Assembly (NCBI GenBank): GCA_965603825.1
Contig: CBFDEM010000016.1
Coordinates: forward strand, 372,001 to 436,000
DNA length: 64,000 nt
Direction: 5' to 3'
From: Blepharisma stoltei ATCC 30299
Lineage: Eukaryota > Protista > Ciliophora
This document shows positions 12,088 to 41,001 of the stretch, piece by piece (position 1 is the stretch's first letter; every line of letters begins with the position of its first letter). The notes under the pieces are model-generated. The model ran no database searches. It saw only the letters and a list, made by a program, of their open reading frames with translations, and had not been told where the DNA came from. A program made the translations under genes and the position numbers.

Positions 12088-14607
12088 ATGTGAAATGAAT
12101 TATTTGATGAAAAAGTGAACTTATCGACACGCGTCAGAAACACAACGACTATGGTTCCGATACACCCAAAGCCAATTGATGAAGACTTTGATCAATATGC
12201 AAATATCAACCTTGTCAATATTTTGGCTTCTACAACAGGGTTTCCTACGAATTGGGATCCAACACTTCATGACCAAATAAACAAAATGAAGAACCTATTG
12301 GAGCAAGAAAAACAAGAGCAAAGGGAAAAAAGGCATAATAAGTATTTGCAGAGACTTGCAAGCAAAAGCCCAAGGAAAAAAGAGTCAAACGAAGATCAAG
12401 AAATAGTCAATGCAAGATTTAAAGCAAAGCTGGAAAGAATCACAAAACATCTGCCGCCTGAAGATTACTATAAGAATTCCCCCATTAAGCCTGGCTTTGG
12501 ATTTCTTGAAAGCTTGATTCATGGAAGAAGAAATATTAACAAGCTCAAAGTAAATATACCGGAAAGTTATTATGCAGCTGATAGAGCTTATTTATTATAT
12601 ACAGATGAAGCAGGTTGTGCTAATTGTGAGACTTCATTTAAAGTGTATGATTTCATGAAAAAAGTGCTAAGTCATAGGGTGCAGTCAGATAACGAAATGG
12701 ATCAAGCTGCAGCTGTTTTTAGAGCGAGAGGAGATTTGTGGATGAAATCAAGTGTACTTATGTGGGATCAGTTTAGATCAAGAATTGAATCTCATGAGCA
12801 GCTGCAGTCAGTGCTACTGCAACGGTATATAAGAACTTCTGGAGATAGACCATCAATTACTAGAATATTTTTTTCAAGCTTCAAAAAAGACCATAGAGCT
12901 AATTTAGGGGTTGCAATTATAAACGACGTTAATGAGATGGAATATTTAAGCCCTTATAAAAGATTCATCATTGATACAAAACTCCCAAACACATGAGATA
13001 TTGTAAATGTTACAGGACATGCGTTAAGGCCTTATGAAGTAGAAGCTAAAAAAATAGCCAGATTTTTAGAAAAATCGTATGATTTGAGGCTTGAAAAAAT
13101 AGTGCTTGATTTCATAAGAGATCAAAGTGGAAAAATCTGACTTTGTAATTGCAAAGGGTTCAAAATTGATATAACGAGCTTGAATAAGCAGGAGTTAATA
13201 TTTTTTGATAAATTTGCAAGGCATTCATTATCTTCTCCAAAATTTTCAACTCCAGCTAGCATCAAGGACGCTAAGGCAAAGTCAATGAGTAAAGTTGAGG
13301 AAATTGTTTATTATGGTAATTATAATTTAGCACATTGTAAATCTTGCAAATTGAATTATGCTCAATCAGATCTCAATCATCTTGTGTCAGAAAGAATGAT
13401 TGTAATTTTTAAAGAGCATATTGAAAGCCGAAGAAACGCCCCATTTGATACTTTAAATGCTAATGTAGCAAATTTTGAAACTTTATCTCAATCTGTCAGA
13501 GTTTGTGACTATTGCTTCACACTTATAAGCAGCGAGCTTGAACTAATTAAAGTTGAAAAAGAACTAGCTAAAACAATGAATATTCCTATAGATAAGTCTT
13601 TTACTTCCGACCCTGACTTGCAATTTTTGCCTCAAACCTTAAACCAATGGCGTATTTTAATATATTTTGACAAATTGGAAATGGTTACGGACACTTATAA
13701 AGATTTGCATTTAAGCATCAAATTTCATAACAGCATTACCGTATTTCCTCTCGAAAACTTATCAGGATTCCAAATATTAAAAATTCCACATATGAAGCTC
13801 TACTATCTTTATCTATCTGCAGATAAATCTCCAAGAGCCTTTTTTAAGCATTTTCAAATAGAAATTCGCATCACACGGGACAGATCTTGAGAATCCAAAA
13901 TTGCTTACTCGAAGTCCTTTTTATTTTTTGAACTCCCTTTTTATTTATCCCCAAATCAGGCCATGAGCTCTCAAAAAAGACTTTTCCTTTATGGCGAAAA
14001 TTCCAATATACTCGGGGAGATTTCTCTTGTAATTGGAGTTTCGAATGATCATAAGATAAAGACAAAATATTTCAAAGTTGGGCTTGAGAAGATATTAGAT
14101 GTATATCTTCCTGATGAAAATCATTATAGATGTGATCCATTACCTGAGCAATGAATGGAAATGCTTGGAAATAAAAATGATGAAAGTAGCACGTTTGGAA
14201 ATAAATCAGGAGAATATAACTATACGCCTCATTTGAATAAAAATGAGATGAAAAGGATGGAAAGCGAAGTACCATTAGAAACTGATAGGAAAAGCAGCAC
14301 TATGAGCCGACGTTCAAGCATTTTTATGCCTATTGAAGAGCCTGAAAGAGAAATAATCCCTAAACTCCAATTAGCGAAGATGAGAAAATCGAAGAAAAAG
14401 CAGAAAAAATTGAGTAAAGATGTCGATCAATATTTAAATAGGAGAGGAACTTGTAACTCAATTAAGTCCAAAGAGACGAGTAATGAGCTAAAAAAATGAG
14501 GAAGCACCGGAGATATAAAAGAAGAAAAGCAAATCTCAAAAAAAACCTCAATGAAGCCGTTAAATAAAATATTCCGCACAACATGCTCAAAAATGCTAAG
14601 CGTCTAG
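12088..14607 (+). CDS. Uncharacterised 839-aa protein: putative ATP-grasp-like domain, CxxC...CxxC module, basic low-complexity tail
   Basis: ATG-TGA-AAT start at 12088; four track ORFs in one frame joined by TGA; TAG at 14605-14607. Motifs VNIPES, LLQRYI, IVLDFIRDQSGKIWLCNCK, CKSC and CDYC. Confidence 0.7.
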
Positions 14608-37905: not shown

Positions 37906-38590
37906 TGCTAGTATTTTAAGTCAATTTATTTATTTCGAATTTTACTTTTGCATTATTTTGGAAATTCATCATGGACTGAAAAATTCTAAAAAAATTTCTA
38001 ATGTTTTTTTTTATCCTTGTATAAATTTTAATAGAGGCTGATTTTGGAGTAAGTATTTTATGCTTTTACTCCACCTGCATATTTTTATATTTATTTGTGC
38101 CAAGATTTATGAGGCGAATAGCAAATATCTAGTTCTCATAAAAGTTAAGCACAGATTGATTATGCCTGCATATATATTTATCGCAATTAACTAAATAGAG
38201 AATAATTAAAAAATCAATAAACGTCAGATTGAAAATTTCTGATACATGCTTATATGAAAACTGAATAAGAATTATTATCATCTTCTTATAAGTTAAGAAG
38301 CTCAGAAAAAAAAATGCTAATAAAATAATGCCATTTTTTGATGCATTGAATATTGAGCTAGAATGGCTTTATTTCGGTTTAAATGATAATTGATAGTGAA
38401 AAAGCCTTTTTATAAAATTTTCCATTTATAAAGAAAGATTCTGTTAGCAAAATGTACTTTAATGATCAATAAAACTAAATATAAATATTATAAACTTTTA
38501 CTTTTTAATCGCTCTTTGCAGATTAACTTGATTTATTAAACAGTCCGAAATTCGTATCTAAAATTATGCATAATCTACTAATAATTAGAC

Positions 38591-40549
38591 TTATGGCATG
38601 ATTGGTTTACAAATCAGGCATTTCATCGATCGAATTTGTGCCATTATAACTTGCTTATCGACATCACTTATATTGAACTCGTTAAGGGTATCTTCAAACA
38701 TTTGTGAATACAGATTGAAGTCTTCCTCAGGTATTCCCAACCTTTCATGGGCTACTTTTATTTTTCTCCTAAACTCAAACGTTGCACATCCATTAAAAAC
38801 CTTGAACATCCCTTTAAAAATCATTTTCATATTTGAGTCTAAAAAATGCTGCTTTAGATCATCGCTTGACAAAATTCTCTTGTATAAGGAAATAATAAAT
38901 TTATTCCAAAACTCATCGCCCCCGTATGCCTCCACTAGATTTCTGCTTCTAACTTTTAACAATTCTGTGTTCATATTCATTTCGTCAATTTTTCTAATCG
39001 CATCAGTAAAACATTTTTTGATATGGACGTCATATTTATTGTCTCATAGCGACTTTGAAGTATTATAAAAGTCGTTTTTCTCTTCTGTCTCTTCAATTTT
39101 TACCTTCTTTGCTTGGTTATCTTGATGAATTTGGTCCATAATTGTTAATTTTTTGGTTAATGACCTGTTTTGATAAGCTTTTATGCTTTGCTTTTTCAGG
39201 TTTTTGATTCTTGCCAAGTTAGAAGGTTTTAAACTTAACACTGGGTCATCTTTTGCGACTATTTTTACATGCTTTGTACTGATGTGGCTTGATGATTGAG
39301 AGATCTGAGGGGGATGATGCGCCTTTGATGACCTCTGAGAAGATAGATTAGAAAATGGGCACACAAACTCTTCAACGCTATTCAACTCAGCGCCTCTCTC
39401 TGTGCTTAAAGCTTTAAGCACGTGTATATTGACTTCGGGCTTAGTTTCCATAAAAGAAATCGCTCGTTTTACTTGTGATGGCTCTCCTAAGTTTATTTCT
39501 CCTATTTCCAATTTAATTTCATGGTTTTTCAACGAAATTTCTACACAGTCTAGAAATGTTCATTTTTTTTCCTTTGACAAAATAAAATCAAAAGTAATTT
39601 CTCTGAGCTCTTCTTCTTTATAAACTTGTTTCCTCAAAAACGATACTATTTTGTCAACCATATTTTCAATTTCAGGCACTTTTACCGTATCTTCAATCAC
39701 CATAATTCCATCTGATGCCCTCGTATTTACAATAGGATTTGTATTTTGGTCTGGAAATTGGTCCTCCCCAGAAAACCTTTCAGTAAAATTCCCAAAATTT
39801 CGAAAACTGCTCAATGAAGGGCAATGATCAATCATTGGCCTTTCAGTTGCTGGCGTCATGCATTCGTTTGTATTTCTGTTAATTATTTTAAAAAGTGGCA
39901 AGTTCATATTACTCCTAATGTTTTTTGGTGTCAGAGTCATGCTTCGTTTTGTGTAATCGGTTGGGATCGCTGTTCTTCTCCTTAAAAGAGGCCTAGTTTT
40001 ATTTGCAATTAAGTAAAATTTGGTTCTGCCTCCAAATCTCCAATAAGCTCTGGTGAGCGAAGATGGCTTACTTCTCGGCTGAACAAAAATTTGCATTTTG
40101 TCTGATGTTTCTGTCGATGAATTTCATAGAGAAACCGCGCTTTCTTTTGTGTATAAGAATTGTGTGGGTTTTCCAAGAATTTTGTAGCAGCACACTGGAT
40201 TTTCGTTGTCATTTTTATCAGGGATTTCAGCAAAGAAATCATCATCAGTGCACAGGCGGGTGATAATCGCCCCATATTTGTTGTTCTGCACTAAATAGCA
40301 GAGGTTTGTGTTGCTGATTCGTAAAAGTGTGGTAGGGATCTTAGCGATGATGTTATTTAAATTTGCATGCAGACAGAAAAGTCTGTAGATATCGAATTGC
40401 TGACTGTTATTTAGTTTTGGTAGAGAATTGAAACCTTTTTTGTGTGCGTTTGGGGTTTGAATTTTCTTATATAGGCCCAAGGGGTATGGGGTAGAGATAG
40501 ATGTGGAGTAAATTGATATTGGCTCACCAACACTTGAATTGTCTTCCAT
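38591..40549 (-). CDS. 652-aa fusion: putative ATP-grasp-like domain plus C-terminal group I truncated (2/2) haemoglobin
   Basis: Four track ORFs in one frame separated only by TGA at 40124, 39560 and 39044. C-terminus NLVEAYGG...SLYKRIL...QHF...KIKVAHERLGI..EDF matches the trHbN pattern. Confidence 0.75.
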
Positions 40550-40871: not shown

Positions 40872-41001
40872 TCTCAAACAGAAATCAAAATTTTTTGGTC
40901 TCTGTGATTAATAATCTCAAACAGAAATCAAAATTTTTTGGTCTCTGTGATTAATAATCTCAAACAGAAATCAAAAGTTTTTTGGTCTCTGTAATTAATA
41001 A
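40872..41001. repeat. Tandem repeat, 3 copies of a 43-bp unit with an internal imperfect palindrome
   Basis: Unit TCTCAAACAGAAATCAAAATTTTTTGGTCTCTGTGATTAATAA at 40872, 40915 and 40958; the third copy has a 1-nt insertion and one substitution. Confidence 0.95.

Follow-up and report, generated by a model that had tools for sequence, protein, structure and literature searches.

A divergent truncated globin fused to a DC4-like domain of ATP-grasp fold in a large gene family of Blepharisma stoltei

The window analysed here, a stretch of 64,000 nucleotides from the heterotrich ciliate Blepharisma stoltei, part of a macronuclear contig, holds four short open reading frames on its minus strand that had been read, from the letters alone, as one hidden gene joining a truncated 2/2 haemoglobin to an ATP-grasp-like domain. 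The question that follows is whether such a protein is encoded and, if so, to what its two halves are related and what a globin might do beside such a partner.

A single intronless gene

With TGA translated as tryptophan, the four frames become one single-exon, intronless gene that runs from 40549 to 38591, encodes 652 aa and ends in TAA (Table 1). That this is one gene is shown by three independent lines of evidence. First, when 50 paralogs are aligned, nothing but TGA or TGG tryptophan codons occurs at codons 142 and 330 (29 TGA and 17 Trp of 50 at codon 142, 21 TGA and 29 Trp of 50 at codon 330), tryptophan is the commonest residue at codon 502, and five full-length paralogs are entirely free of TGA. 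Second, the translation is identical, letter for letter, to the public protein P0010; the gene was not hidden, being already present in the genome's own annotation as an uncharacterised 652-aa protein of which only the domains are unannotated. Third, in four probable RNA runs contigs extend over the gene with no joint and leave the adjoining intergenic DNA uncovered, and single contigs of 1.9-2.0 kb cross the gene (38564-40543 and 38596-40539) with ends that coincide with the gene ends. These runs come from one study and their RNA nature is a guess; the contigs speak for presence and continuity, not expression level. The sequence-only reading is upheld in that the four frames form one gene and, by the same contigs, probably one transcript.

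Four separate genes, or a globin gene starting at ATG 38980, are ruled out by the TGA-free paralogs, the TGA columns and the spanning contigs; because the latter are jointless, a separate transcript from ATG 38980 is not what is seen. The candidate start itself, Met524, lies inside a conserved helix and is replaced by Ile, Leu or Ala in 11/50 paralogs. Compared with the closest paralog, synonymous sites are near saturation and dN is 0.09-0.33 along the whole frame. An open reading frame of 156 aa on the plus strand (38598-39068) is taken as a shadow frame, because the divergence is synonymous in the minus frame. The queries of the searches were the public record P0010 and pieces and paralogs free of TGA. 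A 43-bp unit stands in three tandem copies (40872-41001, 97% matches) in intergenic DNA some 320 bp upstream of the gene start.

Table 1. Features of the gene and its product, in positions of the window
Feature	Positions	Strand	Basis and conservation
Whole gene: DC4-like, putative pseudo-ATP-grasp domain, linker, amphipathic helix, truncated globin	38591..40549	(-)	Reading-frame translation
TGA codon 142, Trp	40124..40126	(-)	Frame and paralog alignment
TGA codon 330, Trp, in an invariant Trp column	39560..39562	(-)	Frame and paralog alignment
TGA codon 502, Trp	39044..39046	(-)	Frame and paralog alignment
DC4-like domain, first part, aa 45-190	39980..40417	(-)	pLDDT >90; profile match to dDC4, E 3.5e-6
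Disordered, variable, basic/Ser-rich insert in the domain, aa 198-267	39749..39958	(-)	pLDDT <50; mean family identity 0.23
DC4-like domain, second part, aa 268-342	39524..39748	(-)	Model, fold search, conservation; Asp321 and Trp330 conserved
Presumed Glu-x-Asn position, aa 334-336	39542..39550	(-)	Asp334-Cys-Val336; variable in family
Disordered linker, aa 345-449	39203..39517	(-)	Model; identity 0.20
Predicted helix, medium confidence, aa 451-476	39122..39199	(-)	Model
Amphipathic pre-globin helix, aa 504-533	38951..39040	(-)	Model; present across family
Divergent group I (T1/N) truncated 2/2 globin, aa 536-647	38609..38944	(-)	Fold, family profile
Tyr556, B10	38882..38884	(-)	45/49 paralogs; only 15/64 distant fusions
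Phe569, CD1	38843..38845	(-)	48/49 paralogs
His601, proximal His F8	38747..38749	(-)	49/49 paralogs; 58/64 distant fusions

A DC4-like domain and a truncated globin

The AlphaFold2 model of the window protein, built from a 96-row paralog alignment, shows a confident alpha/beta domain split by a disordered insert, with Pro72, Lys123, Gln153, Arg167 and Trp170 conserved in its first part, then a disordered linker, an amphipathic helix (hydrophobic at 514, 517/518, 521 and 524, acidic at 522 in 77/87 sequences) and the globin. A second model, that of the compact distant member P0069 (521 aa), places these parts in the same order. Two independent predicted models and profile searches support the proposed union of an ATP-grasp-like fold with a 2/2 globin. 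The linker between the domains is long and disordered, pTM is 0.50 for the window protein and 0.62 for P0069, and the models show no convincing packing of the two domains. P0069, which comes from a metagenome, also has a confident N-terminal helical hairpin (aa 9-59) that occurs in distant members and is lacking in the window protein.

The closest fold matches of the N-terminal domain are both subunits of an outer-dynein-arm docking complex: distal DC4 (dDC4) of Leishmania (9e78_5K; Z 17.8, rmsd 3.4, 212 residues, 12% identity), followed by TbDC65 (9e5c_7c; Z 16.6/16.4), with the next ATP-grasp protein at Z 11.8. The same two rank top for both independent models, dDC4 at Z 17.8 each time. The kinship also holds at the sequence level, because a broad profile of the N-subdomain has dDC4 (E 3.5e-6) and TbDC65 (E 2.6e-3) as its only significant matches among solved structures in the PDB; a narrow, Blepharisma-only profile found no solved relative, and the broad profile alone reached DC4. 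Pfam gave no match, ATP-grasp included, in the N-terminal half of any member. PMC7617938 describes dDC4 as an ATP-grasp-like subunit that sits on the DC1/DC2 coiled coil and touches the outer-arm (ODA-alpha) heavy chain, and the loss of which slows swimming; DC4 orthologs occur in other flagellated species, including Chlamydomonas (PMC11971395).

The central and C-terminal subdomains of the ATP-grasp fold are recognised at Z 9-12 over 150-190 residues (synapsin, the D-Ala-D-Ala ligase Ddl, TTLL, RimK), with structure matches in the Atlas too, and the ligase alignments begin after the ligases' own N-terminal (A) subdomain (DdlA 121, synapsin 215). Thirteen residues after the conserved Asp lies what we take, from the motif spacing of TTL and RimK, to be the metal-binding Glu-x-Asn position. 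Here it is Asp-Cys-Val, and in the family it varies: Glu is present in 3/50 paralogs and Asn in 1/50, the paralogs having Asp, Lys, Gly, Asn or Ser followed by Lys or Arg, and distant members Lys, Ser, Asn, Gly or Ala. Lys123, Gln153, Arg167 and Asp321 are 96-100% conserved in paralogs and, by motif spacing only, may correspond to the nucleotide-binding Lys, Gln-Glu, Arg and Asp of the fold. The domain is probably a non-catalytic pseudoenzyme that, given the near-invariance of these four residues, may have retained nucleotide binding.

Kinship to DC4 does not equal orthology. The genome holds at least 97 DC4-like loci, counting the more remote fusions and the relatives without a globin, and most of them cannot, because of that number, be a docking-complex subunit, which argues against simple DC4 orthology. 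One such locus is a second gene of the window (12088-14607, plus strand; about 839 aa with TGA as Trp; N-domain profiles E 5e-11), in which no globin is detectable and which has a long Ser/Lys-rich tail. Another globin-less relative, P0138 (1006 aa), has weak EF-hand matches at about aa 730-830, hinting that the DC4-like domain may be paired with other sensory modules. Across the whole genome (G000) there are also at least 57 tubulin-tyrosine-ligase-like loci (PF03133, E <1e-20).

The group I pattern recognised earlier in the last ~115 aa is borne out: a divergent truncated globin of group I makes up the C-terminal domain. Group I trHb structures match the window globin at Z 13.6-14.2 in the fold search (VIA); the globins of both models (pLDDT >90) score Z 13.3-14.6 against group I, above groups II, III and 3/3 globins. 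The family profile matches the Tetrahymena trHb 3aq5 at E 4.7e-4, then 2.3e-11, free of gaps over 98-99 positions, and of 13 weak PDB matches to the C-terminal piece alone, 12 are truncated haemoglobins. With Pfam PF01152, the check that had been suggested, the window protein itself stays below the 21-bit gathering score at 15.6 bits, but eight fusion paralogs reach it. The landmarks are as first claimed: Gly-Gly after helix A (G543-G544), Tyr B10, Phe CD1 and His F8 (Table 1). Among the domain's residues, only His F8 is near-invariant in highly divergent members of ~20% overall identity (58/64, background His 2.8%), and from it putative haem binding is inferred. A cyanoglobin-like covalent link to haem is rejected, since the matching position in helix H, placed by sequence spacing, is Met642, neither His nor Cys.

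The distal side departs from group I in more than had been supposed. In the gap-free 3aq5 register, E7 is Phe in 28 of 49 paralogs and lies within a three-residue deletion in the other 21, the window protein among them, E11 is Val, Ile or another hydrophobic residue, and E14 is Met. This register comes from the profile alignment and may be shifted by one residue, in which case E11 would be the invariant Ile577 and E14 would be Gly580, so that Gln and Phe would again be lacking. In the paralog alignment against 3aq5, the polar distal Gln at E7/E11 and the Phe E14 of group I trHbs are absent. On this register the shortening falls at the CD/E junction rather than, as had been read, in the E-F region, and the loss of the E7 Gln stands but is not confined to E7, the E11 Gln being replaced as well.

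The genome also encodes at least ten single-domain truncated globins (L056, L057, L060, L061, L062; G000:C54:165910-168007, C44:274274), the best Pfam scores among them being those of the trio on C54. Six share a YGG-x2-FW-type signature with the fused globin and have no distal Gln; the nearest single-domain relatives of the fused globin in the genome are of this kind.

The paralog family and its relatives

The genome of B. stoltei contains about 50 full-length fusion paralogs of 610-710 aa, which form one clade (SH-aLRT 99, in a tree that was built without trypanosomatid sequences and whose deep forks are uncertain). The globin is their most conserved domain, with a mean identity of 52% against 36-39% for the N domain, and dN/dS, where measurable, is 0.03-0.08; the family is under strong purifying selection. 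With some 50 conserved copies in one genome, the set of globins is very large for a unicellular organism, and Pfam misses most of it. The window gene is a dispersed copy. Elsewhere, arrays of ~16 and ~17 members, each on one strand, lie at G000:C22:175400-212900 and G000:C58:651500-690400 and look like duplicated versions of one ancestral array. A few paralogs are interrupted (L031:4320-6152, that is G000:C22:178819-180651; L041:6009-6974; L044; L054), with an in-frame TAG within the globin at C22:178819 and half a gene at C58:840008; these may be pseudogenes, tiny introns or assembly errors. For the split gene L066 of a metagenome contig, a tiny intron was rejected, the break being an assembly gap (a run of N).

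A profile search over 1.84 billion representatives returned 184 relatives. Of 87 distant relatives of at least 420 aa, 64 have a C-terminal globin, with His F8 in 58 and Tyr B10 in 15 of these; in some relatives the globin is entirely absent. His F8 has been lost in one subclade (P0080, P0091, P0133, P0144) and in one Blepharisma protein; these four and P0041 keep the whole architecture without it and are candidate non-haem pseudoglobins. The named carriers of the fusion are B. stoltei and, in line with the survey of heterotrichs proposed from the sequence, Stentor coeruleus (SteCoe_21405, SteCoe_6585); because both carry it, the fusion predates the Blepharisma-Stentor split. Other fusions lie on gene-dense eukaryotic metagenome contigs, four of them in tandem on one contig. 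Thecamonas and Ploeotia have relatives without a globin, and relatives by structure only occur in oomycete and ciliate clusters. The named non-ciliate relatives seen are flagellated protists only: Thecamonas, Ploeotia, the oomycete clusters and, according to PMC11971395, Chlamydomonas.

Possible roles and comparison with known systems

The kinship to dDC4 suggests a haem-based gas or redox sensor attached to cilia or cytoskeleton, and the explanation tentatively preferred here is a haem-gated adaptor on the ciliary or cortical cytoskeleton rather than a globin-coupled enzyme. In the ciliary axoneme or the cortical microtubule cytoskeleton, the N-terminal pseudo-ATP-grasp domain would attach to a partner, a coiled coil or a motor, much as dDC4 sits on DC1/DC2 and contacts the outer-arm dynein heavy chain, and may still hold a nucleotide. 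The globin would hold a b-type haem via His601 in a largely apolar pocket. Weak O2 stabilisation is expected, because Tyr B10 is present but there is no Gln at E7 or E11, and this would suit reversible sensing of O2, NO or haem redox state. The amphipathic helix conserved ahead of the globin, which is perhaps the interface of a dimer or bundle, could relay the ligand state, which would alter docking or the activity of the partner; the ~50 paralogs would diversify position or ligand tuning.

Observations on the side of the adaptor are that dDC4 and TbDC65 lead the fold search and are the sole significant PDB profile matches, that Glu-x-Asn is unconserved, that 49/49 paralogs and 58/64 distant fusions have retained His F8, and that the globin is the best conserved domain (52% against 36-39%) at dN/dS of 0.03-0.08. 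By analogy, the docking role of DC4, the occurrence of relatives in flagellated protists and the precedent of androglobin in the ciliate axoneme would point the same way. Against it stand the 97 or more DC4-like loci, the modest pTM values with the long linker, the loss of His F8 in one subclade and one Blepharisma protein, the relatives without a globin and, weakly, the fact that a Stentor proteome of ~1750 entries and its membranellar-band table list neither of the two named Stentor fusions, a check that concerns two identifiers only. A bolder version, unlikely as it stands, is that heterotrichs joined a haem sensor to an outer-dynein-arm docking-type subunit in ~50 tuned copies, such that O2, NO or redox state would drive ciliary motors mechanically with no kinase or cyclic-nucleotide relay. 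If the axonemal or cortical placement is true, ciliates that inhabit oxygen gradients would have a direct route by which O2, NO or redox state acts on the beating of their cilia. Stentor, which has the fusion and in which RNAi is available, makes this testable now.

The alternative that carries most weight, unlikely though it is, is a tethered scavenger or buffer without signalling, in which the DC4-like domain does no more than keep a haem globin close to cilia or cortex. The globin would then act as NO dioxygenase, peroxidase or local O2 buffer, like soluble group I trHbs; its nearest structures belong to that class, in which trHbN of M. tuberculosis and THB1 of Chlamydomonas are NO dioxygenases. 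Tyr B10, kept in 45/49 paralogs, fits such chemistry, but just 15/64 distant fusions have it, and the Gln E7/E11 hydrogen-bond network that stabilises O2 has given way to hydrophobic residues. The long disordered linker of the models would suit an independent tethered domain, yet the protein is without a reductase domain, and the genome already has at least ten single-domain trHbs, so that ~50 diverse paralogs exceed the needs of detoxification.

It is improbable that the protein is structural, its globin fold being mainly a dimerisation or interaction module with haem absent or merely a stabilising cofactor. The His-less proteins (P0080, P0091, P0133, P0144 and also P0041) that retain the entire architecture fit this, as does the degenerate distal site, and non-haem globin folds exist in RsbR and the phycobiliproteins, according to PMC8717448. 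A His F8 that is near-invariant against its background, with Phe CD1 kept, is nevertheless hard to explain without haem ligation.

More improbable still is an enzyme reading, in which the haem domain controls an ATP-dependent ligase or kinase that is atypical yet active. In its favour are the ATP-grasp fold (Z 9-12 with synapsin, Ddl, TTLL and RimK) and the near-invariance of Lys123, Gln153, Arg167 and Asp321, with a spacing like that of nucleotide-binding residues (a presumed correspondence). Opposed to this are the variable Glu-x-Asn position in paralogs and distant members, the ligase alignments that start past the N-terminal subdomain, the lack of a Pfam ATP-grasp match, and a nearest relative that is described, in PMC7617938, as a structural docking subunit. 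Of the enzyme or scaffold first envisaged for this locus, the enzyme is weakened by the unconserved Glu-x-Asn and the unmatched ligase subdomain, and the scaffold has gained DC4/TbDC65 as a lead. Finally, an artefact of separate genes or chance globin resemblance can draw on the window protein's own Pfam score (15.6 against 21 bits), but is effectively refuted by paralogs without TGA, by RNA-type contigs that each span the gene, by the fusion's presence in Stentor, which uses the standard code, by purifying selection over the whole frame, and by a profile E of 2e-11 and a fold Z of 14.

The fusion adds a chimeric globin architecture for which no description was found in the literature searched, a scope that leaves out most subscription journals, and the domain joined to the globin is related to a dynein-docking subunit whose structure dates only from 2025. 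A review mentions chimeric T1 globins in ciliates, without a DC4-like partner (PMC7475203).

Among known systems, the docking-complex proteins dDC4 (Leishmania LtaP31.0090, PDB 9e78 chain 5K) and TbDC65 (T. brucei, 9e5c chain 7c) have the same degenerate ATP-grasp-like domain, but the full-length profile found no globin in them, and two trypanosomatid paralogs compare with ~50 fusions and at least 97 DC4-like loci in B. stoltei. The group I trHbs (Tetrahymena 3aq5, Paramecium 1dlw, Chlamydomonas THB1/THB4/THB11, M. tuberculosis trHbN) share the 2/2 fold, Gly-Gly, Tyr B10, Phe CD1 and His F8 with the window globin, which differs in being C-terminal in a 650-aa protein, in its E7 (Phe or deleted), hydrophobic E11 and Met rather than Phe at E14, and in the YGG-x2-FW signature that is common to a set of single-domain Blepharisma trHbs. 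The C domain of synapsin, the next-best ATP-grasp match (Z 11.8), is an ATP-grasp fold that serves as a nucleotide-binding scaffold; at ~10% identity it has no profile-level match and its context is another. Globin-coupled sensors (HemAT, DosC, AfGcHK) likewise combine haem globin, helix and second module, and fold alignments place the pre-globin helix over the additional N-terminal helix that sensor globins have. However, those of the S family have an N-terminal 3/3 sensor globin and, at the C terminus, an output domain (PMC7475203), whereas the window globin is 2/2 and C-terminal and its partner looks catalytically degenerate; the architecture does fall outside the described sensors, as had been suspected.

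Androglobin (ADGB) is likewise a chimeric globin tied to motile cilia, and in Tetrahymena it is a component of C1b/C1f (PMC8175508). It consists, as described in PMC7949040, of a calpain-like domain and a circularly permuted globin, neither of which was found in the window protein by Pfam or fold search, its globin being colinear with trHb; the partner domain is unrelated and the globin type different. In summary, the protein lies outside the globin-coupled sensors, the androglobins and the active ATP-grasp ligases, is not demonstrably a DC4 ortholog, and would, if the proposed placement is true, be a second, independent ciliary chimeric globin beside androglobin.
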